Origin: Octopus bimaculoides
Taxonomy: Eukaryota
Direction: 5' to 3'
Assembly (NCBI RefSeq): GCF_001194135.2
Contig: NC_068991.1
Location: 47,504,833 to 47,568,832, forward strand
DNA length: 64,000 bases
This document shows, piece by piece, positions 14,547-62,829 of this stretch. The translations under genes and the position numbers were made by a program. The notes under the pieces are model-generated. The model searched no databases. It was given only the letters and a program-made list of their open reading frames with translations, and had not been told where the DNA came from. Position 1 is the first letter of the stretch; every line of letters begins with the position of its first letter.

Positions 14547-16770
14547 CATTCTTGGCTTTATGTAGATAAATATTCCACTAACCTTGAAAGTGTGACATGC
14601 TAGTTGATTGTCTTCTATATAATAAACTAGTGGCAATAGTTGAGGTCTTTATATATCATATGCTTTCAACTTCCAGCTGGCTACTTACTTTTTTTCTTTT
14701 TATATTAATTGAACAAGAGCTTGAAGCAGGCCTGATGGATCTTTTCTATTTGGTTGTCACTTTTCAATTTCTTCATTTTTCTTCCAACTAATATATTTGA
14801 TGTATTGATGTAGTTTTGTATGGTAATCATTGATAGGAAATTCATTTTTGCCATAAATCAATAAATAAAGAGTTAATGGCTTTTAAAGTTTGCAAATTTG
14901 GGGTAATTTTAGCCACTTGAAAGCCACAGACATATAGGTGCCTGTTTCCATAGTAACAAACCAAGCTTTTACCAAGCTGCTTACCCACACAGTCATTTTG
15001 CACTTATTAAATGCTTAAAACACACTAAGTATGAGGTGATCGTGAGACATGCTAAAAATAATAGCTAAATAGGCCTTAAATCACACACCAAAGTTTTTTG
15101 TTTGTTTTTGCATAATAGTATGAATTCCTGTCTATAGAATACAAATTTGCAAACATTTTCTGAAAATTCTAAAAAACTTAAAAAGTTACAAGGGGTTATA
15201 TGGTGTGTGTAGAGCAGAATTACATCAATATTTCATTTGTTCACAGTTGACAACACGTGCAGTCATGCACAAAATGACGTTTTCCAAATCCTGTTTTCTG
15301 GCTTGGTAAAAATGATCAAACTTTAAACCTCTGTAACTTTTATAAAAAAATTTTCAGGGAAAAAGTGAATGAGCCTCTGAGATACAGTGTGAATGGAAAA
15401 TTACATCAATACACCAAATTATAAATTTCCTGTAAACTTTAAAATTTCCGTGCAGCCAAATTGAAAAGATCTGGCCTGATCAGCAATGCTTTCTAGCTCA
15501 TCCACTGAGAGATTGATTTTTTTTTTATGGTTTATTGAAAGAAATGTAATAGCGTCTTAGATTTGCAGGCCCTTTGAAATTCATATCTTATCTCTGGACA
15601 GTGTCTCTAGTGAAGAATCTTAATTCTTAGTTGTCAAAACCATCTAGCTTGGGAGAGTAATGTTCAATGCTTTATGTAATATGGGCTCTTACATAATTAA
15701 CATTCCTGCCAAAGACAAAATCTTTGGTAATCACTTTTTTATTCAGATGGATAAGTCTCTCAAACTATCTAAGGCTTGAGAAATATAAAACTAGTTCCAG
15801 TACACTAAGTGGATTACCTATTAGTAACTGTCGGCCAAACTAAAATCATCTTTGTAAGCTGTTGCTGTTTATCACCCTTCCAAATCAGTTCCGATCGAGC
15901 CAAAATGCTCCAGTTCTTTTATCCAATGTTTTCCACTTTTTTTTTAAGGCTGTAGGATGTAATATGAAGGAGCTTTAGCTGCTATTTCTGGCAACTCAAG
16001 CAGCCGCATAGGCATTCCATCATTTCCTTGTTGGTCTGTGTCACAAAAGAAAGTTGCTTGGCCTGTTGATTTACAGTCTGTAAATCTATCAAGCTGCAAG
16101 GTTTGAACTTCTGACCTTGCAGTCAGTAACCAACCACCACTGTACCTCTTCAACCAGTGTGACTAATTTTAAATATTCTTTAATAAGTTGTACTGAGCTT
16201 GAACAAACAATGTACTGAATATAAGTTGTCATGACAACTGACTGAGTATAATGAGCTTTAGATGGGAAGGGAGTAAGATTTGAAGTCAAGTTGTTTTTAT
16301 CTTAGTGTTGTTTGTTTAAATATAGATGAGACTGTTGGAGCTGAAGTGAAATTCCAGCTGAATACACTAAGTGCCATGAATAGATTGGCTAATATGATTT
16401 TGATCAGAAATTCTAATTGAAAAGTTGTTGTGTACTTTGGTTTAGTATGTTCTTGTAATTGTTTATTAAATTTGATGTGATAAGTGGCTGTGATATTTCT
16501 GCATAGGCAGCTATGTATTGTTGGACATGTGTTATAGCTATAGAGGTAATAAATATAATCAAGATATATACAAAGTGCGATGGGTAAATTATCGCATGCG
16601 CATTGTTTGTTTTTGACTTTGTCAACTACATAGTATAGTAGGGTCAGTCGGGCACTGTCTGTGAGAAAAACAGCACCATGATGCAATTCACTCTGCCAGG
16701 AATTGGGAAACAACATGCTGTACTGCTTGGCATTTGTGCTGGAAGCTCTAATATGAACATTTCAGAGTGT

Positions 16771-17380
16771 TAAAGATGTCAATCTGAGGACACATACCAA
16801 GAGTGATAAAGATCAAACTTCCACTCCACATCATGGTGTTTGGAGTGATCACTAGTGATGATAACGTTATGCTTCCATTCATCTTCCCACACAGCCTCAG
16901 ACTCAACATAGAGGCCTACTTCAAGTGCCTGGAAGAGGTAGTGCTGCTCTGGGTCAAGAGGGTGGCTGCTGGAAGACGCTATGTTTGGCAACAGGACTCT
17001 GCACCATGCCACACAAGCAGGAGAACCCAGTCATGGCTATCAGACAATTTCTGCAGCCACATCAACCACCTAACAACCATCAACATCTGGCCACCTAACT
17101 CCCCAGACTGCAACCTACTTGATTAGTATGTGTGGGGCACAGTTGAGCGAGAGACCAACAAAACTCCTTGTAACATCAAAGATGAACTGAAGGCAAGGAT
17201 TATGGCAGAATTCACCAACTTAAACAAGGAGACTGTCCAGAAGAGTTACAGGAGATTCTGGAGGCTGTGGTTGAAGCCAATGGCAATTTTATTGGATAAA
17301 TTTACTCTTTAGTATTTCAAGATATTTTCATGTAATTTTGGTAAATATATCTGTTAAAATGAGATGACAGTTTATTCATT
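16771..17380 (+). mobile_element. Tc1/mariner transposase 3' fragment (maT/DD37D-like)
   Basis: IMVFGVITSD..., WQQDSAPCH, WPPNSPDCNLLD motifs; stop at 17126. Confidence 0.85.
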
Positions 17381-17809
17381 GTAGCCTGTATATATACATA
17401 CATACAGACACCATTGTGTGGTTAAGAAGCTTGCTTTCCACCATGTGGTCTCAGGTTCAGTTCTGCCACAAGGCACTTTTGGCAAGTGTCTTCTACAGCC
17501 CCAGACTAACCAAAGCTTTGTGAGTGGATTTGGTAGGTGGGAACTGAAAGAAACCTGCCCTGTGTGTGTGTGTGTGTGTGTGCATTTGTCTTGACATGAT
17601 GTGGTGATTTTTTTTTTTTTTTTTTTTTTAAAGAGCATCGCTGTCATACAAATTATGTTGTTCATGCCCAATCTTCCAGCAGGAAATATTTTCTAGCTTG
17701 GAAACAGGTAATGGTTGTTGACAGGAAAGGTATCAGGTCACAGAAAATCTGCTTCAACGAATTCTGTCTGACCTATACAAATTAGAAAAGTGGACATTAA
17801 ACACACATA

Positions 17810-47347: not shown

Positions 47348-47710
<363 letters not shown>

Positions 47711-47928
47711 TCAATGAGTGACCCGGAGGGAAGATGGTAAATGTATGGATTTGGGAAGATACAAAGGCAGCACTGAATATAGCAAAAGATTACAGATGAA
47801 AGCAGACGAGTAAATTGAAACCCAACAGGACAAGAGTACACCCAACAATATGCTGCCTGTCTTTGGCTTGATATAGAAATTAATAACATTTTAGAGACTG
47901 TAACAGAAGACAATTATTAAAATGGTAG

Positions 47929-47998
47929 AAGCTTTCAGAACAAGTGATCATCAAATTATGATTCTCAGTCCGCCACTTATAGTTCATCATATAAGCTT
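47929..47998 (-). ncRNA. Derived U43-like C/D snoRNA, all boxes intact (copy A)
   Basis: C 47984-47990, D' 47965-47968, D 47935-47938, perfect 7-bp stem GAAGCTT/AAGCTTC. Confidence 0.75.
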
Positions 47999-48477
47999 CA
48001 TTTAGCAACCTCTAATAACAATAACTTGAGTAAGACAAATGATCATTAATATCTAATCATGAGAGGACTTCAAAATGCTCACCTTGTGAAACCTTATATT
48101 AGTTATTTTACAATTAATATTTACTTACAGGATGCAACTTTAATAGCTAACTCTGCATACTCATTTGGAAAATAACCTGTGCCTCATATTTCATGCACAC
48201 ATGATTTTCCAGAACACCTGCACTCTACATTTGGTTGCCATGCAATTTAATACATCGTACCTTAACACCATACATGTTTTACATTCAAACCAGTCATTCA
48301 CACTTACCTGCGACAATCACATCATCAAAATCTCAAAGCTATGAGGCATTACATGATTAATTCAAATAAATAAGCATTAGATTTGACACAATAATCTGAA
48401 TGTTAAAGCTGAGTATGCTGTAGAAATTGACCATAATGATTTCAAACAAACAAAAATTATGTAGAAGATAATTATCA

Positions 48478-48545
48478 AAGCCATCAGTCTAAGTGATTGT
48501 CAAATTTTGATTTTTCAGCCCGCCACTTACCTTTCAGCATAAAGT
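48478..48545 (-). pseudogene. Degenerate derived U43-like unit (copy B)
   Basis: D and D' present, box C reads ATGCTGA, several substitutions. Confidence 0.55.
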
Positions 48546-48823
48546 TCACAAGTTGGAAAATATAAGGACAATTTTGGCCTAATAATTTTCCAGCATATCA
48601 CAATTTGTAAACCCCATGCAAATGAATATAAAAATTCAAAATGTTTGCCATATCTTAAAACTTTACTAAAACGAAGTGAACAAAACAATTAACTTTACAT
48701 ATTAACTCCATAACTTACTCTGAAATGGAACTTGAAGAGGAAAAAATGCTTAATATCTAAAGGGTAAATTAAATTCAAGAGAAAGTTTAATAAACCATAT
48801 GAAGACCAATTATTGAAATGGTA

Positions 48824-48887
48824 GAAGCCATCAGAATAAGTGATCATCAAATTATGATTTTCAGTCCGCCACTGAATATAAGCTTCA
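48824..48887 (-). pseudogene. Derived U43-like unit lacking box C (copy C)
   Basis: D, C' and D' intact; segment with TCATCAT deleted. Confidence 0.65.
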
Positions 48888-48987
48888 TCTAACAGCCCCA
48901 AAAGCTAAAAAATATTACGCAAACCAAGCAGTTTGGATTGAGAAACATCAGCTTTAACAAACCATGACTCCTTATAAGAATATAATT

Positions 48988-49015
48988 TTCAGCCTGCCAC
49001 TCATCATCTAGCAAC
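48988..49015 (-). pseudogene. Fragment of derived U43-like unit (copy D)
   Basis: ttttcagcctgccactcatcat plus shared flank; 3' half missing. Confidence 0.4.
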
Positions 49016-49068
49016 CCCACAAGTTGTGAAACACAGCTGTAATATACCATGCCTTACAATTTTCCTGT

Positions 49069-49231
49069 AGGCACAAGAGTGGGTGTGTGCTAAGTAGCTT
49101 GCTTACCAACCACATGGTTCCGGGTTCATTCCCACTGCGTGGCACCTTGGGCAAGTACCTTCTACTATAGCTTCGGGCTGACCAAAGCCTTGTGAGTGGA
49201 TTTGGTAGACAGAAACTGAAAGAAGCCCGTC

Positions 49232-49272
<41 letters not shown>

Positions 49273-49460
49273 TGTGTGTGTATGTTTGTCCCCCTAACAT
49301 TGCTTGATAACAGATGGTGGTGTGTTTACGCACCCGTAACTTAGCAGTTCGGCTAAAGAGAATGCTAGAAGTACTAGGCTTCCTGTGGTTGATTTACTCG
49401 ACTAAAGGCAGTGCTCCAGCATGACCGCATTCAAATGACTGAAACAAGTAAAAGTAAAGT
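49069..49460 (+). mobile_element. Dominant SINE inside snoRNA array
   Basis: Same family. Confidence 0.88.
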
Positions 49461-49790
49461 ACCTTGTCAAAGAATTTACAACCAAAATGCCAACACCACC
49501 ACTTTAAGATGTCTGCTTCACTTTTTGCATTGAACAAAACGATGTGTAACGATTGAACCTAACTTCATTGGACATTTTCAGTATCTCAGCCACTATCCCT
49601 GTATTCATATACTGATAAACACAATTTTTGAAAGGCTAAAAGTAATTGGAGAAACCCATGTGTAACCTTCCCTATGCCAAGTGTTTATCAACAAAATGTT
49701 ATGGTCTTTCAGGTTTACAACAGTCAATATTTAGTTTATAAGTGGTAATAAACTATAGAAACCAAATTATATGAAAGATAATTACTGAAA

Positions 49791-49860
49791 AGCTAGAACA
49801 GAATAAGTGATCATCAAACTGATTTTTCAGTCCGCCACTTATCATTCATCATATAAGCTT
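49791..49860 (-). pseudogene. Derived U43-like unit with box D mutated to CTGT (copy E)
   Basis: C 49846-49852 and guide intact; plus strand ACAG replaces TCAG. Confidence 0.6.
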
Positions 49861-50388
49861 CACAAGCTGTAAAACATAACTATGATATAATTTTATCATA
49901 ATAAGCCTGGCCTCATAATTTCCAGCATATCACAATTGGTAAACCTCATGCTAAGTAAAAGCCTGGTTGCTCTTGCAACCCTCTCCAGCCGAGCATCCCT
50001 AACCTTGTTGGCCTCTAAGTGCTGGTGCTGCGTAAAAAGCACCCAGTACACTCTACAATGGCTGGCATTACAAAGAGCATCCAGTTGTAGAAACCATGCC
50101 AAAACAGACATGGAGCCTTCAGCTGGTCAGATCACACAATCTATGCCAGCATGGAAAATGGACATAAATAATGATGCAAATAATTGTAACAATTCAAATT
50201 AAATTTGCCATACCTCAAAAACTTTACTAAAACTAAGTGAATAAAACAATTGTTAACACTCTTTAGTTGATATCCCATCAAAAGAGCCTTGACTTACTCT
50301 GAGATAGAGGTCAAAGAGGAAAAAAAAATGCCTAATATCCAGATGGTAAATTAGATTCTCTAGAGTAAGCTTAATAAGCAAACCATAT

Positions 50389-50724
50389 ACTCTTATTTGT
50401 TTCAGTCATTTGACTGTGGCCATGCTGGAGCACCGCCTTTAGTTGAGCAAATCGACCTCAGGACTTCTTCTTTGGATGCCTCGTACTTATTCTATGAGTC
50501 TCTTTTGCCGAACCGCTAAGTTACGGGGACGTAAACACACCACCATCGGTTGTCAAGCGATGGTGGGGGGACAAACACATACATATGACGGGCTTCTTTC
50601 AGTTTCCGTCTACCAAATCCACTCACAAGGCTAGACACTTGCCCAAGGTGCCACGCAGTGGGAATGAACTTGGAACCATGTGGTTGGTAAGCAAGCTACT
50701 TACCACACAGCCACTCCTGTGCCT
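50389..50724 (-). mobile_element. Dominant SINE inside snoRNA array
   Basis: Interrupts flank AAACCATA|TGAA that is uninterrupted in the paralogous cassette near 48792-48804. Confidence 0.88.
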
Positions 50725-50750
50725 ATGAAAACCAATAATTGAAATGGTAG

Positions 50751-50820
50751 AAGCCATCAGAGTAAGTGATCATCAAATTATGATTTTCAGTCCGCCACTT
50801 ATAGTTCATCATATAAGCTT
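50751..50820 (-). ncRNA. Derived U43-like C/D snoRNA, all boxes intact (copy F)
   Basis: C ATGATGA 50806-50812, guide CTATAAGTGGCGG, D' 50787-50790, C' TTGATGA, D 50757-50760, stem GAAGC/GCTTC. Confidence 0.75.
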
Positions 50821-51518
50821 CATCTAACAGCCCCAAAAGCTATAAAATATCTCACAGACCAAAGTATATTTTTGTTTTGATCTTAAAAAAAAAACAGAAG
50901 CTGTTAGACACCACAAAATGATAGCATCAACATCAAGGATGCTTCAAACCACTCAATTTCATTTTTAGTGTAACTATCTTTTAATAACTACTAGCAGAGA
51001 TACCTGGCCTTGCTTGGGATTAAAATGGCATAGATTCTTTCATTGTTTTACTTGTTTCAGCCATGTGATTGTGGCCATGTCAGAGCACAGCCGTTGGCCA
51101 AACAAATCGACCACAGGATATATTAGTACTTATTCTATCAGTGCCTTTTGCTAAACCGCTAATTTATGGGAACATAAACACAGCAACATCGATTGTCAAG
51201 CAATGGTGGGGGTACAAACACACCACAAACCTTGCTCTATACATACGTACATACATATGCACATCTATACACGTGTGTATGTACGTATATGTGTATATAT
51301 ATATATCTTACTTGTTTCAGCTGCCTGAGTGTGGCCATGCTGGAGTATTGCCTTTTAGTTGAAGAAATCAACAACTGGACTTACTCTTTGCAAGCCTGGT
51401 GCTCATTCTACCAATATCTTCTGCCGAATCGCTAAGTTATGGGGGAGAGGAGAGAGAAAACAACACAAATATATATATACATATATATATATAGGACAGA
51501 CTTCTGCATGACTCACTG

Positions 51519-51585
51519 GGTGATCAGTAAAGATATTTTATCCACAATCTAATTCAGTGAACGGATCATGTCTCATCATATCACC
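51519..51585 (-). ncRNA. Orphan box C/D snoRNA family 2 (copy a)
   Basis: C 51573-51579, D' 51554-51557, D 51524-51527, stem GGTGA/TCACC. Confidence 0.8.
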
Positions 51586-52392
51586 TTATATGTAGAAGCC
51601 TCCACCACACACCATCAATATTGACCTATACTTCCTCAAATTTTGATTTCTATACTCAAGTTTACAATCCAACTCCACTTACAAATTCAAACAGCCAGTA
51701 TGCATATATACATATATATTTATACATAGTAAATCTAAAAAAAGAAAAGCAAACATGAAAAAACTACAACGCGAGGACGTGGTACATGCAATGTATTAGC
51801 AAATGCTCAGGAAAGGAAAGAAAGATGGTTTAACGTTTCGAGCAAAGCCCATCTTCAGAAATGTGGTTACATATATATATATATATATGTATACACGCAT
51901 ACATAAATATATCATAGTAAAAGTATTAATAGTTTCACTATTGATACATAATACTGAAATAGTGTAAGGAATAAGAGATTGCTCCAGGCTTGCATTAAGC
52001 AAGTTGAAAATTTTTTTGGCCCATAACATTGCATGGACCAAGTAAGGCATGTATAAAATTTGAATGAAATTGGCTGGGTAGTCCTTAAGTTTTAGTGATA
52101 CGCACATACGGACATTCTCAGTTTGATATATATATATATATATAGATGAAATTAACTTCACATGTACAACATTTTTAGCACAAATGCCTAGTGAAGACAG
52201 AATGAACATCTTAGGTCCATATCGTAATTAATACCAACACAACTTTTGAAAGGCTGAAAGCAATAAAATCATGTACAGACTTCCCTCTGCCAAGTAGGTT
52301 ATCCACCAGGTGTTAATGTCTATCAGGTACGCAAGAGTAAATTATAAACTATAATAATCAACCAATATAAAAGACAATTATTGAAAAGTTAG

Positions 52393-52430
52393 AATCCATC
52401 AGAATAAGTGATCACCAATTGTGATTATTT
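52393..52430 (-). ncRNA. 3' half of derived U43-like unit (copy G), cut by assembly gap
   Basis: TCAGAATAAGTGATCA plus shared flank GACAATTATTGAAA; remainder is N. Confidence 0.55.
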
Positions 52431-53225
52431 NNNNNNNNNNNNNNNNNNNNNNNNNNNNNNNNNNNNNNNNNNNNNNNNNNNNNNNNNNNNNNNNNNNNNN
52501 NNNNNNNNNNNNNNNNNNNNNNNNNNNNNNNNNNNNNNNNNNNNNNNNNNNNNNNNNNNNNNNNNNNNNNNNNNNNNNNNNNNNNNNNNNNNNNNNNNNN
52601 NNNNNNNNNNNNNNNNNNNNNNNNNNNNNNNNNNNNNNNNNNNNNNNNNNNNNNNNNNNNNNNNNNNNNNNNNNNNNNNNNNNNNNNNNNNNNNNNNNNN
52701 NNNNNNNNNNNNNNNNNNNNNNNNNNNNNNNNNNNNNNNNNNNNNNNNNNNNNNNNNNNNNNNNNNNNNNNNNNNNNNNNNNNNNNNNNNNNNNNNNNNN
52801 NNNNNNNNNNNNNNNNNNNNNNNNNNNNNNNNNNNNNNNNNNNNNNNNNNNNNNNNNNNNNNNNNNNNNNNNNNNNNNNNNNNNNNNNNNNNNNNNNNNN
52901 NNNNNNNNNNNNNNNNNNNNNNNNNNNNNNNNNNNNNNNNNNNNNNNNNNNNNNNNNNNNNNNNNNNNNNNNNNNNNNNNNNNNNNNNNNNNNNNNNNNN
53001 NNNNNNNNNNNNNNNNNNNNNNNNNNNNNNNNNNNNNNNNNNNNNNNNNNNNNNNNNNNNNNNNNNNNNNNNNNNNNNNNNNNNNNNNNNNNNNNNNNNN
53101 NNNNNNNNNNNNNNNNNNNNNNNNNNNNNNNNNNNNNNNNNNNNNNNNNNNNNNNNNNNNNNNNNNNNNNNNNNNNNNNNNNNNNNNNNNNNNNNNNNNN
53201 NNNNNNNNNNNNNTCCCATTAAAGA

Positions 53226-53314
53226 TATGCCATCAGTCTCAAGAACCAGAATGTATACCCTCCATGTATGTGGCAAAATCAGGTTATACAAGCTAGAGCT
53301 CATCCTCTGGCATA
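53226..53314 (-). ncRNA. Orphan box C/D snoRNA family 3 (copy a)
   Basis: Perfect 7-bp stem TATGCCA/TGGCATA, AGGATGA 53300-53306, D' 53279-53282, D 53233-53236. Confidence 0.65.
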
Positions 53315-53845
53315 CTGAAATGAACCCAACATAGATTGTTCACTTCTAATGACACCCCTCATTCACTCCCTGCAACTCACTGACCATCACCTACCTTTCT
53401 TCACCAACACCCTAGCAGCCATTACTCTCTCTACCCTTCCCAAGCTGTCCCTACCATCTTTTATCTTTCTTACCAACTGAAGCCCAGTTATTCCCACCTC
53501 CACAACAAACTGCTTCTGCCCCTTCTATAACACTTTTCTAACCTCTTAATATTCAGTATACTCTTTGAATATAACCATCAAATCTGAGTTTTGGTTTACC
53601 TGAGGCTACAGATGACACCTGCCCCAAAAATGCTGTGTAATGGGACTAAACTCAAAACCATATGTTTGCAAAGCAGACTCTTGACCATACAGCTATGCCC
53701 GTATCTTGCATTTTATAAGCCAAAAACCTGTGCAATTAAACTGTCTTATGGAATGATAAAATAAAAACTTTACTACATACTAAAATCATTGCTGATTGTA
53801 AAAACACACAAAGAATGATCTCAAAGGAAGTCAGGTGAAATAAAC

Positions 53846-53920
53846 AAGCATATCAGTGAAGTGACAATCATTCATGTTTAGGATTTCAGTCCGCCCGTCA
53901 CTTAAATCATCACATAAGCC
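53846..53920 (-). ncRNA. Box C/D snoRNA, U43-like (copy H)
   Basis: C GTGATGA 53907-53913, guide AGTGACGGGCGG, D' 53886-53889, 3' end TGATTGTCACTTCACTGA. Confidence 0.85.
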
Positions 53921-54437
53921 TGATCAAGAAACTTCACAACCAAAAACCATCAAAACTTGTCATTACATTCCAACTAATACTAACACAACCCACTTATGAG
54001 CAACTGACAAACCCTAAAAAAATTACCATTAAAAAAAAAAAAAAAAGCTTATCCATAAAGCAACAAACAGCAAAAAAATTTATAACCCACATCATAAACT
54101 AAGCACCAATCTAAAATAAAGAGCAAAAGGCCAACCAAGAAGACTTCAAATATCACAACCACGAAGATGCTAGAAATAATCGTTTAGCAATCCTTCAAGC
54201 CATAAAATAACATACAATCTACGGTACAATTTTTGCTAACCACAGCATTAGCACCATCATATGTCAAACCTCGATTTTCCCTGCACTGAAGATGAAAGAT
54301 GCAAGGCATTATATCCAATGCACTATCAAGTAAGTTAACTCTTATTACAAATAATAAAATGTGAAACTAAACCAAACAGTGGTCACAAATTTAATACCAA
54401 CAGTAGTTGAACTATCAAGTTTTAAGTGATCTTCATC

Positions 54438-54497
54438 TGGGGATCAGAAAATCCTTTAACAACACTGCAATTCAGTGAAAGGATCGAGTTATATCAC
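54438..54497 (-). pseudogene. Family 2 snoRNA pseudogene (copy b)
   Basis: D and D' present, guide mutated (GATCCTTTCA), box C lost. Confidence 0.6.
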
Positions 54498-54890
54498 TTT
54501 GCAGAGGAAAACACCACATCTAGCATTAATCAATATAATCTAATTACACCCACCCATATTTAGCCCCAAATGTAGACAAAAAAATCTTTGTATCAAATTA
54601 AAACATTTACTCTATATTACACAACATTTATACGAATTCTTGGTTCTCTGAATATTACCATTTTTTCCAATAGTATTTTGCTTTCTTACCCATACAAAAA
54701 CAAACATCAGCTTCAAATTTCGTAGAAGCATCTCATCAATATGAAGAGTTTATTGCTCCAATAATTCATTTTATAAGCTAAGTTTTGAAAAAATGTGAAG
54801 GCAGGCATAATTTCTAAAACACTCCCTACAGAAAGTGTACACCTATAGCTTTTCTCCATGCTCAAGTAAAATTTAAATTATCATTCACAG

Positions 54891-54966
54891 AAGCCTATCA
54901 GAAAAGTGACTATCATTCAAATTTTGGACATCAGTCCGCCCGTCACTACATATTCATCATATAAGC
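54891..54966 (-). ncRNA. Box C/D snoRNA, U43-like (copy I)
   Basis: C 54954-54960, same 14-nt guide, D' 54931-54934, D 54898-54901, stem AGCTT/AGGCT. Confidence 0.87.
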
Positions 54967-55095
54967 TATTCTCACTCAAAACTGCAAAAACCATATAAGG
55001 CATAATTTAATTAAGTCCATATTAACTTAAGTGGCATTCAATTGTTTAAAGTCTCAGACTTCAAGATTCGTCTTTTAGTTTGTGTGTGTGACAAC

Positions 55096-55364
55096 ACATG
55101 TTGTCAACTGTAAATACACAAAATATTATCACTAATATGGCTTTCTCGATGTCGATCTAGTTTTCTTCTTGGAAATTGACCTCCACAAATGAAGCAGGTA
55201 AGAATGAACCCTAGCTGCATATATGCAAGGCTTTTCTCAAGTTTAAAATGCGACATTGCTTTTGTTATCTACATTCCACACACAAACATACAGAAAAGAA
55301 GTATGTATGTGTATCGAAAAAGCCATATTAGTGATATTTCATGTGTTTACAGTTGACAACACAA
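55096..55364. mobile_element. MITE with about 50-bp TIRs
   Basis: 55099-55150 is an imperfect inverted match of 55313-55361; related end at 15241-15260. Confidence 0.7.
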
Positions 55365-55669
55365 ATACATCAATAAAGATGCAGTTTGGAGAAGGAAAAT
55401 TTTTAATGTATAAATGCAGCAGAATGGGCTAGAGGCATTATCTAGTTGGACAATAGATAATAGTAAAACGAACTACAGAAACCCAGAGTAACTATACAAC
55501 ATTCTAACACCACAAATGGCTTACCTACATTACATTCGTGTTTAGATTATGCATCTTAGGTTACAATATATAAAAAAAAAAAAATCCTGTAAAAATTCAA
55601 AAATTCAAGTCAAACTTCAGTCAGAACTAACAGTTCAAGGTGGTGAAATTATTTCAATGATTTCCATCT

Positions 55670-55736
55670 GGAGATCAGAAAAGATTTTGACAACAGAACA
55701 ATTCAGTGAACGGATCAAATTTTCATCATATCATCC
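55670..55736 (-). ncRNA. Orphan box C/D snoRNA family 2 (copy c)
   Basis: C 55723-55729, guide TGATCCGTTCA conserved while spacer diverged, D' 55703-55706, D 55675-55678. Confidence 0.75.
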
Positions 55737-56650
55737 TGCTGTGGAAAACACCTAACCAAACACAAGCCTGCCAACACATTTCATTTAATTAACCCTTTTG
55801 ATACTGACCTGCTTGAAACCATCTCTGGTTCTATGATACTTATTGTTTTTAAACTATTTTATTCAACCTTCAACATTTAATCCATGCCCAAATATTCTCC
55901 TTAGTTTACATTCAAAACAGCGTCTTACACCCGCCCTACAATGTCAGTCTAAAAATATTACAACACCATTGAAATCTCAAAGATACAAAATAATGCCGGA
56001 TCAATTTAGCACAATACAAAAAAATCTGTAGATTTGAAACCTGAATGTTAAAGAGTAAAAGCTTTTCATCAGCTGTCCGCCAACACTTTTTTCTGCAAAA
56101 TAGGGGTAGCTTATCCTGCTCAGGCCATATTATTAGCATTATCCTGCATTTGAGAATTTAAAATAACTTCTTTAACTTTCTAAGACATCTCAACGCTTCT
56201 AAAGCAAACTTTGTTTGTTTGTTTACGTTCATCATAATTTGAATTTTTCTTTATGTTTTTATGTTCCAAAGATCAGTTTAATAATGACAAAGGTATGCTA
56301 GCAAAAGAGTCTAACAAAGTATTTATATAATGTAACTTGACTGTTACGAAACACCTCAAACCAGCAAGTCTTATATTCAAGTGATTATCTTACTATTTAT
56401 ATAAAATTTCAATAGGAAACACAAAATTGTCAATAGCCTAATACTGATAAATAAAAAAAAGTTTATTTTACACAACTTTTGTTTTAATTATATTAAAATC
56501 TGCAACAAGTCATTGTATTCAAAATAACAAGCAATCTAATTCATGCATGTAATGAGAAGGCAGGCATAATTTCTAAAACATTGCCTACAGAAAGTGTACA
56601 CCTATAGCTTTTTCCAAACGCTCAAGTAAAATTTAAATTATCAATCACAC

Positions 56651-56727
56651 AAGCCTATCAGAAAAGTGACTATCATTCAAATTTTGGACATCAGTCCGCC
56701 CGTCACTACATATTCATCATATAAGGC
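56651..56727 (-). ncRNA. Box C/D snoRNA, U43-like (copy J)
   Basis: C ATGATGA 56714-56720, guide GTAGTGACGGGCGG (14 bp to 18S, one G-U), D' 56691-56694, D 56658-56661. Confidence 0.85.
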
Positions 56728-56987
56728 ATAATTTAATTAAGTCCATATTAACTTAAAATGACTTACGGGTAAAAATAAATAAATAAAATTTTGGTGAGAT
56801 TTATTGCCTTTCTGATTCAATTCATTTTGAAAAGAATTTAGTTAAGTAATTTTACCATTATTCAACTGGGGTTTGGAACATAAAATGAAATTTTAGGCTT
56901 GAATTTTTATCATTTTGTGGATCACTGCACCTCATTCAAATACATGACCACCATGTTCAGAAATCCAGTTCCCTTCAATGTCCTTAA

Positions 56988-57493
56988 CCCTTTTGATACT
57001 AACCTGGCCGAGTACCGATTGTTATTTAAATGTAAATTTGCACACAAATCCCGTTAGTACATTCGTGAAAATACGTGACTTCACTTTGTAAATAGTTGAG
57101 TTATTGTATCGACACTGTTTGGGAGTTTCATGCTATCAAGCAGTGATTCTGAATTTGAAGGCTTTTCAACAGAAGATATGGAGATATTGAGAAAAAGAAT
57201 GAATGAGGTACAAAAGCATGTAGTGAATGAAAATGAATCGGGTATTTCTGTATCCGAAACCGAAAGCAGTGATTCTGAAGAAACTGAAAGCAGCGACAGA
57301 GAGGATGATTTTACCAGAATGGAGTAAAAACTTTAAAAATCTTTTTACTAACAAATTTTCTGAGGAGACAGGGCCTACCTATATAGTCTTTCGCAGGAAA
57401 AGTTCTTTAATGAAACTAGTCCAAATTCATGCTTATTTTAGAACTGAAACTCATGCGGGGTGTATTTTGGTCAGAGATATATTATTGAAAGGG
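56988..57493 (+). mobile_element. Internally deleted piggyBac-like element
   Basis: TTAA-CCCTTT...AAAGGG-TTAA; acidic ORF MLSSSDSEFEGFSTED at 57130 like piggyBac N-termini. Confidence 0.65.
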
Positions 57494-57590
57494 TTAAACC
57501 TTAAATATCCTGAGATACACCTCATTTATTGAAATGCAGCACACAATACTAACACATCATAACCAATATCCAAAATTGCATGACTCTTTG

Positions 57591-57657
57591 GGTGATCAGA
57601 AAAGATATTTTATCCACAGTCTAATTCAGTGAACGGATCATGTCTCATCATATCACC
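57591..57657 (-). ncRNA. Orphan box C/D snoRNA family 2 (copy d)
   Basis: GGTGA-T-ATGATGA-gac-ATGATCCGTTCA-CTGA...CTGA-TCACC; 67 nt. Confidence 0.8.
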
Positions 57658-58153
57658 TTATATGGAGAAACCTCCACCACACACCATCAATATTGATCTA
57701 TACTTCCTCAAATTTTGATTTCTATACTCAAGTTTACAATCCAACTCCACTTACAAATTCAAACAGCCAGTATGCATAACACAAACACCCCAAAGACAGT
57801 TACGGTAATACAAGAGTCATTTACTTAAGTCAATAAATAGTCCTTTCTGCAATGGGCACAAGGCCTGAAATTTTGAGGGAGGGAATAAGCCAATTACACT
57901 GACCTCCCCCCCCCCTGCTCGCCTAACACTTATTTTATCAACACCAAAAGGAATTATAACTCAGAATGCAAAGTTGGACGAAATGCCACTAATCATTTTG
58001 TCTGGCACGCCAACAGTTCTGCCAGTTTGCTGCCTTATTTCAATAAACAATGGAAACTAAATCACCTCTAGATGCGACAGAAAGCAAGTGAACCACCAAC
58101 AGGCAATAAACAGTACAATAACTATGCACTAATGCAAGTGCAATGCAACAAAC

Positions 58154-58230
58154 AAGCCTATCAGAAGAGTGACACTCATCATGATTAGGACATCAGTCCG
58201 CCCGTCACTAAGGTTTCATCACATAAGCTT
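58154..58230 (-). ncRNA. Box C/D snoRNA, U43/SNORD43-like (copy K)
   Basis: C GTGATGA, guide TAGTGACGGGCGG, D' CTGA, C' ATGATGA, D CTGA, terminal stem; 13 bp to 18S CCGCCCGUCGCUA. Confidence 0.88.
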
Positions 58231-58787
58231 GATCTATACTAGCATTACTTCTGTATTGCATGAATGCATAGCTACACACATCAGAGTGAAGGCAATTCAA
58301 GACCCATCCTTATATACATATAAAACTATGTTCCCTGAACTCCTCTTTACTAAAATAAACAAAATGTATTCGTCATTTACTTCAGGAAGTGGGGGGGGGG
58401 AATTCTGATTGAACAGGTTACACATCTTGCATAGCAAATGCCTTTATACAACTGAAATTTTCTCCCATAACCATGGGAAACAAGTTACATTCTTTATGCT
58501 TGCTAACGTCCGTATTATGAAGAAAAAAAAAACTAGAAAAAGTAAATCTAGTACAAAGCCCCAAGGGAATATGTTTTCCATTAAGCAGCACATTCAGAAG
58601 GGGTGGGGGTGCACAACATACATGAAAATACAGTAGTAGCCAAATCATATAAATTTATTTAAAATTACTTTATATCCCAAATCCTGGGGAAACAACACTG
58701 TCAGTCCAAGAATCCCACAACCAAGTTTAATCAACAAATATTTACTCTTTTCCATCCCAGAAGAAGGCCATAATTTCCCATTAAAGA

Positions 58788-58876
58788 TATGCCATAAATC
58801 TCAAGAACCAGAATGTATACCCTCCATGTATGTGGCAAAATCAGGTTATACAAGCTAGAGCTCATCCTCTGGCATA
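58788..58876 (-). pseudogene. Family 3 snoRNA with box D destroyed (copy b)
   Basis: Same body as 53226-53314 but plus strand TAAA replaces TCAG at 58795-58798. Confidence 0.6.
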
Positions 58877-60005
58877 CTGAAATGAACCCAACATAGATTG
58901 TTCACTTCTAATGACACCCCTCATTCCCTCCCTACAACTCACTGACCACCACCTACCTATCTTCACCAACACCCTAGCAGTCATCACTCACTCCACCCTT
59001 CTCAAGCTGTCCCCACTATCTTATCTTTCTTACCAACTGAAGCCCAGTTATTCCCNNNNNNNNNNNNNNNNNNNNNNNNNNNNNNNNNNNNNNNNNNNNN
59101 NNNNNNNNNNNNNNNNNNNNNNNNNNNNNNNNNNNNNNNNNNNNNNNNNNNNNNNNNNNNNNNNNNNNNNNNNNNNNNNNNNNNNNNNNNNNNNNNNNNN
59201 NNNNNNNNNNNNNNNNNNNNNNNNNNNNNNNNNNNNNNNNNNNNNNNNNNNNNNNNNNNNNNNNNNNNNNNNNNNNNNNNNNNNNNNNNNNNNNNNNNNN
59301 NNNNNNNNNNNNNNNNNNNNNNNNNNNNNNNNNNNNNNNNNNNNNNNNNNNNNNNNNNNNNNNNNNNNNNNNNNNNNNNNNNNNNNNNNNNNNNNNNNNN
59401 NNNNNNNNNNNNNNNNNNNNNNNNNNNNNNNNNNNNNNNNNNNNNNNNNNNNNNNNNNNNNNNNNNNNNNNNNNNNNNNNNNNNNNNNNNNNNNNNNNNN
59501 NNNNNNNNNNNNNNNNNNNNNNNNNNNNNNNNNNNNNNNNNNNNNNNNNNNNNNNNNNNNNNNNNNNNNNNNNNNNNNNNNNNNNNNNNNNNTACCCCCC
59601 CACCCCCACCCAAGTGCTCAGCTTACTGTGTAGTGTAGTTGACATTAGGAAGGGCATTTAGCTACAGAAACCGTGCTAAGGTAGATATTGGAGCACTAGT
59701 GAGGTTACTAGGTAACTTGAAGATTGAGTTGGGGTGCACAATTAAGGAGCTGAAGTGTGATAGAACAGGTGTCTTGCAGAAAAGGAGATACACAATTTCC
59801 TCACCTGGAAAAAGCAAAAAAAAAAAAAAGGTACTTGGTGAACATGAAAGAAACTAGAGATAGGCAGCTGGAAAGAAAGGATAGGGAGTCAAGTGTGCTG
59901 AACCTTTCCCTAACTTCAAATGCAACTGATCCAGTTATTTCAGGTACATTAAGTTAAGCAGGTCCAACCTGCAAATGGGAATATTCCATTACCTCCCACT
60001 AAAGA

Positions 60006-60092
60006 TATACCATCAGTCTCAAGAACCGGAATGTTTGTTCTCCATGTATGACAAAATCAGACAATACAAATTAGAGCTCATCCTCTGGCATA
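60006..60092 (-). ncRNA. Orphan box C/D snoRNA family 3 (copy c)
   Basis: TATGCCA-G-AGGATGA...CTGA (60057-60060)...CATTCCGGTTCTTGAGA-CTGA-TGGTATA; 67 nt after the exon 3 donor. Confidence 0.65.
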
Positions 60093-60159
60093 GATCTTAT
60101 TAAATATCACATTTACATAATTCAGAAAATATGAAATCGAAAAAATAAGTGAAACGAAC

Positions 60160-60280
60160 CTCAATGAAATTTAAACAACCATCATTAGGTACGAAGGCTG
60201 TGATCTTTTTACCATTCTTTATGAGCTGTACTCTCACACATTTTCTGATGGCTGAGTTAGGCTGTTTGGCTTCAACACCA
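60160..60280 (-). CDS. RPS23: RPS23 exon 3 ([19 protein letters not shown]...LNFIE)
   Basis: Invariant KQPNSA loop; ttcag acceptor, GAG|GTTCGT donor, 121 nt. Confidence 0.97.
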
Positions 60281-60391: not shown

Positions 60392-60551
60392 ACTTTTTCT
60401 AAAACGATTCCCTTAGCATGGGAAGAACCGCCAAAAGGATTGGCCTTGTATCTGGTACCCAAATTTGCCTTTTTGTAGTCATTATCGTGCCATCTCTGTT
60501 TACGGCGATGATTCTTTAGCTTTCGTGCAGTTCTCAAACCTCTGGGCTTAC
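60392..60551 (-). CDS. RPS23: RPS23 exon 2 ([12 protein letters not shown]...GIVLEKV)
   Basis: uS12 sequence; tttag acceptor, GT|GTACGT donor, 160 nt. Confidence 0.97.
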
Positions 60552-62825: not shown

Positions 62826-62829
62826 CCAT
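62826..62829 (-). CDS. RPS23: RPS23 exon 1 (ATG G)
   Basis: Minus strand GCCGCCATC-ATGG|GTAAG; phase 1 matches exon 2 (GT AAG CCC = G K P). Confidence 0.9.

Follow-up and report, generated by a model that had tools for sequence, protein, structure and literature searches.

A U43-derived box C/D snoRNA subfamily with a shortened guide in intron 3 of octopus RPS23

The RPS23 locus and its U43-like elements

The subject of this analysis is a 64,000-nucleotide (nt) window of the Octopus bimaculoides genome (assembly GCF_001194135.2, NC_068991.1, positions 47,504,833 to 47,568,832), in which an earlier note had described derived copies of the box C/D small nucleolar RNA (snoRNA) U43 with a 4-nt guide deletion, possibly retargeted. 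The listing of open reading frames (ORFs) revealed exons of the ribosomal protein gene RPS23 on the minus strand, with exon 1 ending at 62826 (ATG at 62829–62827), exon 2 at 60392–60551, exon 3 at 60160–60280 and exon 4 at 47348–47494; spliced together, these encode 143 amino acids, with a sequence identical to the RPS23 proteins of O. bimaculoides, O. sinensis and O. vulgaris. From a reading of positions 47500–53000 and all matches to the motif TCAGTCCGCC, we identified 11 related U43-like elements, all on the minus strand and all within intron 3 (47495–60159, minus strand, 12,665 nt), that is, in sense orientation relative to RPS23. With up to two mismatches the anchor motif has 29 matches, compared to 13 ± 3.7 in shuffled sequences, and its exact matches are grouped within 47965–58193. 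Seven derived copies, among them all those of the earlier note, span 47928–52430, and four canonical copies span 53846–58230.

An intronic site on the coding strand of a host gene is characteristic of the C/D class, and the typical hosts in animals are ribosomal protein or translation genes; RPS23 is a highly expressed gene of the former kind. Human SNORD43 (U43) has RPL3 as its host, and RPL3 was dismissed here after a tblastn search gave no match. The O. bimaculoides locus in GCA_001194135.2 carries the same copies, with N gaps at matching gene positions.

The canonical copies lie on the minus strand at 53846–53921, 54891–54967, 56651–56727 and 58154–58230, and read on the RNA strand as terminal stem, TGATGA, (N)4-6 AGTGACGGGCGGA, CTGA, loop, C′, 11 nt, CTGA and stem. 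In the derived copies the spacer between boxes C and D′ has lost 4 nt, such that the plus strand reads TCCGCCACT in place of TCCGCCCGTCACT and the D′ guide on the RNA strand changes from AGTGACGGGCGGA to AGTG----GCGGA, a clean deletion. The resulting layout is GAAGCTT ATA TGATGA ACTATAAGTGGCGGA CTGA AAATCATAATT TGATGA TCACTTACT CTGA TGGCTTC, with a guide spacer of 15 nt and a C′-to-D spacer of 9 nt (11 nt in the canonical copies). C/D snoRNAs in general recognise their target RNA through at least 10 complementary nt located 5′ of box D or D′, and the target is modified opposite position 5.

Only two of the seven derived copies in O. bimaculoides, A (47928–47999, minus strand, 433 nt upstream of exon 4) and F (50750–50821, minus strand), retain all four boxes (C TGATGA, D′ CTGA, C′ TGATGA, D CTGA) together with the terminal stem, which the earlier note had also described for these two. 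Copy A reads GAAGCTT-ATA-TGATGA-ACTATAAGTGGCGGA-CTGA-GAATCATAATT-TGATGA-TCACTTGTT-CTGA-AAGCTTC, and F carries the same guide, ACTATAAGTGGCGGA; the two differ at 5 of 72 nt, and the 12-mer TCCGCCACTTAT is exactly common to A, E and F, as had been noticed before. The terminal stem has 7 base pairs (bp) in A (GAAGCTT with AAGCTTC) and 6 in F, including one G-U (GAAGCT with GGCTTC). The centroid folds contain this stem, with a fold energy no better than that of shuffled sequences, as is usual for C/D RNAs. A box C (RUGAUGA) near the 5′ end and a box D (CUGA) near the 3′ end, the hallmarks of the class, are found in A and F (ATGATGA and CTGA) but not in B, C or E.

The other derived copies, likewise on the minus strand, show varied damage. 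Copy B (48477–48547) is degenerate (C = TGCTGA, C′ = TGACAA, guide AGGTAAGTGGCGGG), copy C (48824–48886) is a pseudogene whose box C was removed by a deletion, and a fragment at 48962–49018 has an internal deletion and nothing recognisable past D′. Copy E (49787–49861) is a pseudogene in which a 5-nt deletion took the GA of box D, leaving CTGT, and its guide reads ATGATAAGTGGCGGA. Copy G (52392–52430) shows no more than its 3′ half, with TGGTGA as C′ and CTGA as D. The claim that the derived subfamily has expanded more than its parent consequently stands by count (seven copies vs four), but with two of the seven intact the expansion is mostly one of pseudogenes. The snoRNA-bearing intron contains two assembly gaps, at 52431–53213 (783 N) and 59056–59592 (537 N); the first cuts copy G and conceals its 5′ half, and O. 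vulgaris, ungapped there, has a degenerate copy only.

In both subfamilies the D′ guide is self-complementary to the spacer before box D (AGUGAC/GUCACU in canonical copies such as 54891–54967, AUAAGUG/CACUUAU in derived copies such as 47928–47999), the 4-nt deletion having displaced this internal helix without destroying it.

Pairing of the canonical and derived guides

Like SNORD43/U43 (RF00221), of which snR70 is the functional counterpart in yeast, the canonical octopus copies have a D′ guide for the 18S decoding centre: it forms 13 bp with the universally conserved CCGCCCGUCGCU, and the methylated C is opposite guide position 5. Aligned with the decoding-site sequence ACCGCCCGUCGCUA, the canonical guide has 13 paired positions (one G-U), whereas the derived guide is left with 5 contiguous pairs, which bears out the drop to about 5 bp reported earlier. 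As a positive control we used a panel of 120 eukaryotic ribosomal DNA (rDNA) contigs, drawn from metagenome contigs scanned with the 18S 3′ end: in 109 of the 120 contigs, canonical guide positions 2–13 match CCGCCCGTCGCT, which lies some 140 nt before the 3′ end of 18S. This corresponds to 18S-C1703, the human site assigned to SNORD43 (PMC7114786). A D′ guide for this site is present in the canonical copies and absent from the derived ones, and the 4-nt deletion thus abolishes the 18S decoding-site guide.

No comparable site emerged for the derived guide. At the same pairing rule (at least 11 of 12 positions paired, at most 2 G-U), the derived guide matched 17 of the 120 rDNA contigs, compared to 15.9 ± 10.1 for shuffled guides, and the matches are scattered with no recurrent site; a strict 10-mer search gave two stray matches. 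On the RPS23 sense strand, in the window and in the three Octopus RPS23 loci, there is no site complementary to the derived guide, and the pre-box-D spacers showed no conserved target either. Two near-matches (CTGCAACTT[A/G]TA), situated immediately 5′ of CAGUUUUAUC-GGUAAAGCGAAUGAUUAGAGG in a short, variable loop of 28S, were dismissed, being lineage-specific and mismatched beside the methylation position. The predicted target 5′-(U)CCGC*CACUUAUA-3′ is not in the conserved ribosomal RNA (rRNA) core, in keeping with the earlier note, the matches in the panel being at chance level.

Family membership was judged by alignment and by Rfam. Derived copies align with canonical copies across the whole RNA at about 80% identity, which supports their common descent with bona fide U43-type genes, and share with them the box order and the terminal stem sequence (AAGCUU / GCUU). 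At the gathering threshold Rfam gave no match in the whole window. Two canonical copies reach 22 bits against the SNORD43 model (E = 3-4), compared to a gathering score of 45, and the remainder of the matches at E ≤ 10 are simple-repeat 'miRNA' (microRNA) matches, which we discarded. A focused scan of 47850–50900 returned nothing meaningful for the derived copies and no SNORD43 match. Derived copies differ from SNORD43 in a guide shorter by 4 nt, in scoring below the Rfam threshold and in their host, RPS23. Judged by sequence, they are U43 paralogues by descent and not functional U43, which supports the earlier view of a real subfamily derived from U43-type snoRNAs.

Orthologous copies and their substitutions

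A look-up with the RPS23 protein gave the orthologous genes, introns included, of O. vulgaris (L001) and O. sinensis (L002), in which positional orthology was assigned by BLAST collinearity. The derived subfamily occurs at orthologous positions in both species, with three intact copies, marked in O. vulgaris by the GGCGGACTGA motif at L001 16330, 17727 and 20797. All three have the expected boxes C and D in both species, and the order C, D′, C′, D of A and F is kept in their orthologues. The orthologue of copy A (L001:20797, L002:18014) is intact, with 4/72 differences, none of them in the boxes or guide positions 1–13, and that of copy F (L001:16330, L002:16289) is intact with 2/72. Copy C has an intact positional orthologue (L001:17727, L002:17462), its box C having been lost in O. 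bimaculoides only. Across all intact derived copies guide positions 1–13 are unvarying.

Degenerate derived copies were also found in O. vulgaris, at L001:17118–17182, near 15821 and near 17590. The first, the orthologue of copy E, has other lesions than E itself (box C is TGATAA, C′ is missing and the guide is scrambled), the second is a heavily degenerate counterpart of copy G, and the third (motif at L001:17590) is a fragment orthologous to that at 48962–49018. The segment containing copy B has no counterpart in the O. vulgaris or O. sinensis locus. Since derived copies are collinear in both lineages, the deletion and the separation into distinct loci predate the divergence of O. bimaculoides and O. 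vulgaris.

Canonical copies number three in O. vulgaris and O. sinensis vs four in O. bimaculoides, so the duplication that produced canonical copies 2 and 3 looks O. bimaculoides-specific; these two (54792–54965 and 56551–56725) form a recent duplicate pair with 94.9% identity over 176 bp. The RPS23 gene of the bivalve Mercenaria mercenaria (25 kb) contains no U43-like element, so that the role of RPS23 as a U43 host does not extend to this bivalve gene. Further searches by sequence were negative: a profile of an ORF that reads through a derived snoRNA, sought in more distant octopods, gave no match, exact look-ups of three intronic or exon-spanning ORFs gave no record, ten neighbouring RPS23 clusters held no cephalopods, and a derived-snoRNA 22-mer was absent from a collection of bacterial and archaeal genomes scanned for host contamination.

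We compared O. bimaculoides with O. vulgaris over ten collinear intron blocks, taking positions outside the snoRNAs as flanks, where 556 of 5384 aligned sites differ (10.3%). For the intact pairs of orthologues A and F combined, 6 of 144 positions have changed (binomial P = 0.006), as have 8 of 233 in the canonical copies (P = 8e-5). The RNAs were partitioned a priori into a core, comprising the four boxes and guide positions 1–12, and the remaining positions. In the pairs A and F the core has no change at 64 positions where 6.6 were expected (P = 9e-4), while the rest has 6 changes at 80 positions where 8.3 were expected and looks neutral (core vs rest, Fisher test, P = 0.027). Of the six changes, two are at guide positions 14 and 15, two in the pre-box-D spacer, one at the first nucleotide of the loop and one at the first stem nucleotide following box D. 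Dead copies (E and G, and C in O. bimaculoides) serve as an internal control, having substitutions and indels in boxes and guide, with lineage-specific lesions. Such a contrast between core and rest is what a working C/D guide RNA should show, and the pattern argues against neutral duplication of a dead copy, for which the earlier note had looked to divergence between species at the rate of the spacers; the core does not diverge at that rate (0/64 vs 10.3% in the flanks).

Similarity among paralogues within O. bimaculoides is another matter. Self-comparison of the array shows a two-copy unit (an E-type then an F-type copy) repeated about three times with insertions resembling short interspersed nuclear elements (SINEs) between. 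At five sites in the core of about 145 nt that copies F and C share, the paralogues cluster by species, and at no site by locus, although the outer flanks are locus-specific, so F and C have been homogenised within each lineage by gene conversion. For this reason the identity between paralogues (93% for A vs F) is not by itself readable as selection, and the relevant evidence is the contrast between core and rest across species. The derived copies are as alike as the earlier note stated, but the likeness partly reflects gene conversion and was overstated there. Birth and death, together with gene conversion, shape the family, and most copies decay.

Possible functions of the derived copies

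Taking these results together, we lean towards the interpretation that A and F are functional orphans, a lineage-specific offshoot of the U43 (SNORD43/snR70-type) box C/D family. The subfamily probably arose by tandem duplication within RPS23 intron 3, at a time preceding the split between O. bimaculoides and the pair O. vulgaris and O. sinensis, and the 4-nt deletion in the D′ guide cost it the pairing with the cytidine of the 18S decoding centre that corresponds to human Cm1703. Purifying selection, acting on the four boxes and guide positions 1–13, UAUAAGUGGCGGA, would since have preserved A and F in O. bimaculoides and the three copies of O. vulgaris and O. sinensis. The derived copies would be co-transcribed with the RPS23 pre-messenger RNA (pre-mRNA), released from the intron and assembled with Snu13, Nop56, Nop58 and fibrillarin, the core proteins that bind the stable C/D RNAs of about 70–100 nt. 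The guide UAUAAGUGGCGGA would then pair with an RNA containing 5′-CCGCCACUUAUA-3′, and the C opposite guide position 5 may be 2′-O-methylated.

The retargeting proposed earlier is plausible for these copies, but no target was found, conserved rRNA offering chance-level matches only. That the single 4-nt deletion created a new and retained specificity, with A and F expressed as small nucleolar ribonucleoproteins (snoRNPs) acting on a CCGCCACUUAUA RNA outside the conserved rRNA core, is a more specific idea that we put forward tentatively. Candidate RNAs containing CCGCCACUUAUA are a cephalopod-specific rRNA expansion segment, a small nuclear RNA (snRNA) or a messenger RNA (mRNA), and the locus yields a precise query of 12–13 nt, CCGCCACUUAUA, for octopus rRNA, snRNA and mRNA. 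If the target were an mRNA, 2′-O-methylation or pairing could affect splicing or adenosine-to-inosine (A-to-I) editing, effects that have been proposed for SNORD115.

Several observations weigh against a guide function for A and F. First, five of the seven derived copies in O. bimaculoides are dead, and copy A taken alone (4/72 vs 7.4 expected) is not significantly slower than the flanks. Second, the copies are not independent observations, given the gene conversion between F and C, and only two lineages are effectively independent, since O. sinensis is almost identical to O. vulgaris. Third, neither the rDNA panel nor the RPS23 sense strand yielded a target, and the self-complementarity of the guide to the pre-box-D spacer could account for part of the guide conservation in the absence of any target. 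Lastly, an intron with many snoRNAs is an unusual processing context in animals, where one snoRNA per intron is the usual arrangement.

Some of these points would also fit a neutral pseudogene family, in which a U43 copy killed by the guide deletion was tandemly multiplied and its intact-looking copies persist through recency and gene conversion. The five broken copies, the species-specific sites of F and C with no locus-specific site, the divergence of copy A, the lack of a target in the rDNA panel or the loci, and the lack of a significant Rfam match for any derived copy are all compatible with such a history, which we regard as possible though doubtful. Recency is difficult to reconcile with a subfamily older than the split of O. 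bimaculoides and O. vulgaris, at which time A, F/C and E were already separate loci. Neutrality is likewise at odds with the unchanged core of A and F, the rest of the same RNAs evolving at the neutral rate, and with the truly dead copies, which do change in boxes and guide. Nor can conversion by itself preserve a whole family, as one donor copy at the least has to be under selection.

A further alternative is that A and F are functional snoRNPs with no role as methylation guides, acting as ends of snoRNA-bounded long non-coding RNAs (sno-lncRNAs), in RPS23 pre-mRNA processing, or as chaperone-type or competitor snoRNPs. Its appeal lies in the at least nine intact C/D snoRNAs within one 12.7-kb intron (four canonical U43, two derived and three of a second family described below), an architecture that, with several snoRNAs per intron, is known to yield sno-lncRNAs in mammals, and also in the unsuccessful target search and the helix that the guide can form with the pre-box-D spacer in both subfamilies. 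We consider it improbable, because end-capping or assembly would constrain the boxes and not 12–13 nt of guide, which are invariant in the intact copies of three species, and because the pre-box-D spacer, the helix partner of the guide, does change. The nine-snoRNA intron nevertheless raises the question of how its snoRNAs are released and whether snoRNA-bounded long RNAs arise from it. No conserved cryptic exons were seen in RPS23 intron 3; hidden exons downstream of the copies were considered and rejected, as the strings resembling 3′ splice sites that follow A and F in O. bimaculoides lack conservation in O. vulgaris.

In behaviour, the derived array most resembles tandem orphan families such as SNORD116 and SNORD115, being multi-copy, tandem and intronic, lacking evident complementarity to conserved rRNA, and evolving by birth and death with gene conversion, a mode described for SNORD116 (PMC8789076). 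It differs from both in being small (2–3 intact copies), in being hosted by a ribosomal protein gene and not by a long non-coding one, and in the presence of a parent with a known rRNA target in the same intron, so that one can see directly how the orphan arose, by loss of 4 nt from the guide. Duplication followed by guide change or loss is the general route to orphan snoRNAs, and lineage-specific paralogues with diverged guides are described in snoRNA surveys of chicken, fungi, plants and Drosophila (among them PMC2653536, PMC5824354 and PMC11014333). We found no description of cephalopod snoRNAs in the literature, a search for snoRNA together with Octopus bimaculoides giving incidental mentions only. 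Orphan C/D snoRNAs are common, but seldom can one be traced so clearly to its source. In this locus the parent, as four canonical U43 copies, and the offshoot are adjacent in one intron and the founding mutation is a single 4-nt deletion, while the boxes and guide of the offshoot are constant in three species and other positions and dead siblings drift. The locus would thereby offer a clean natural case of how a guide RNA gains a new target or a non-guide role; should the copies prove unexpressed or targetless, it would be an ordinary birth-and-death snoRNA array.

RPS23 intron 3 also houses a second C/D family on the minus strand, at 51519–51585, 57591–57657, 55670–55736 and approximately 54421–54515, one example reading GGTGATA-TGATGA-GACATGATCCGTTCA-CTGA-...-CTGA-TCACC. 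Two of its blocks, 51505–51706 and 57577–57778, are 96.5% identical over 202 bp. Rfam gave weak matches below threshold to SNORD2, snoZ40 and SNORD98 (24–28 bits), and positions 2–11 of the D′ guide pair with the conserved 28S segment GAAUGGAUCA in six contigs of the rDNA panel.

The SINE-like repeats between the snoRNA copies lie at 49068–49456, 50388–50725, 51046–51273 and 51308–51443 and share 69–78% mutual identity, some being inverted; only in O. bimaculoides does one of them adjoin the 3′ flank of copy F. Elsewhere in the window, an ORF fragment on the plus strand (16803–17126) reads ...WQQDSAPCHTSRRTQSWL...WPPNSPDCNLLD, which we take to resemble the catalytic region of a mariner/Tc1-type transposase. 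Finally, a 436-bp contig (JAENPV010000087.1) of a Campylobacter fetus assembly (GCA_016612955.1) carries, under the annotation '30S ribosomal protein S12', the coding sequence of a protein that is identical to RPS23 of Octopus, and is almost certainly a contamination of that assembly with eukaryotic cDNA.

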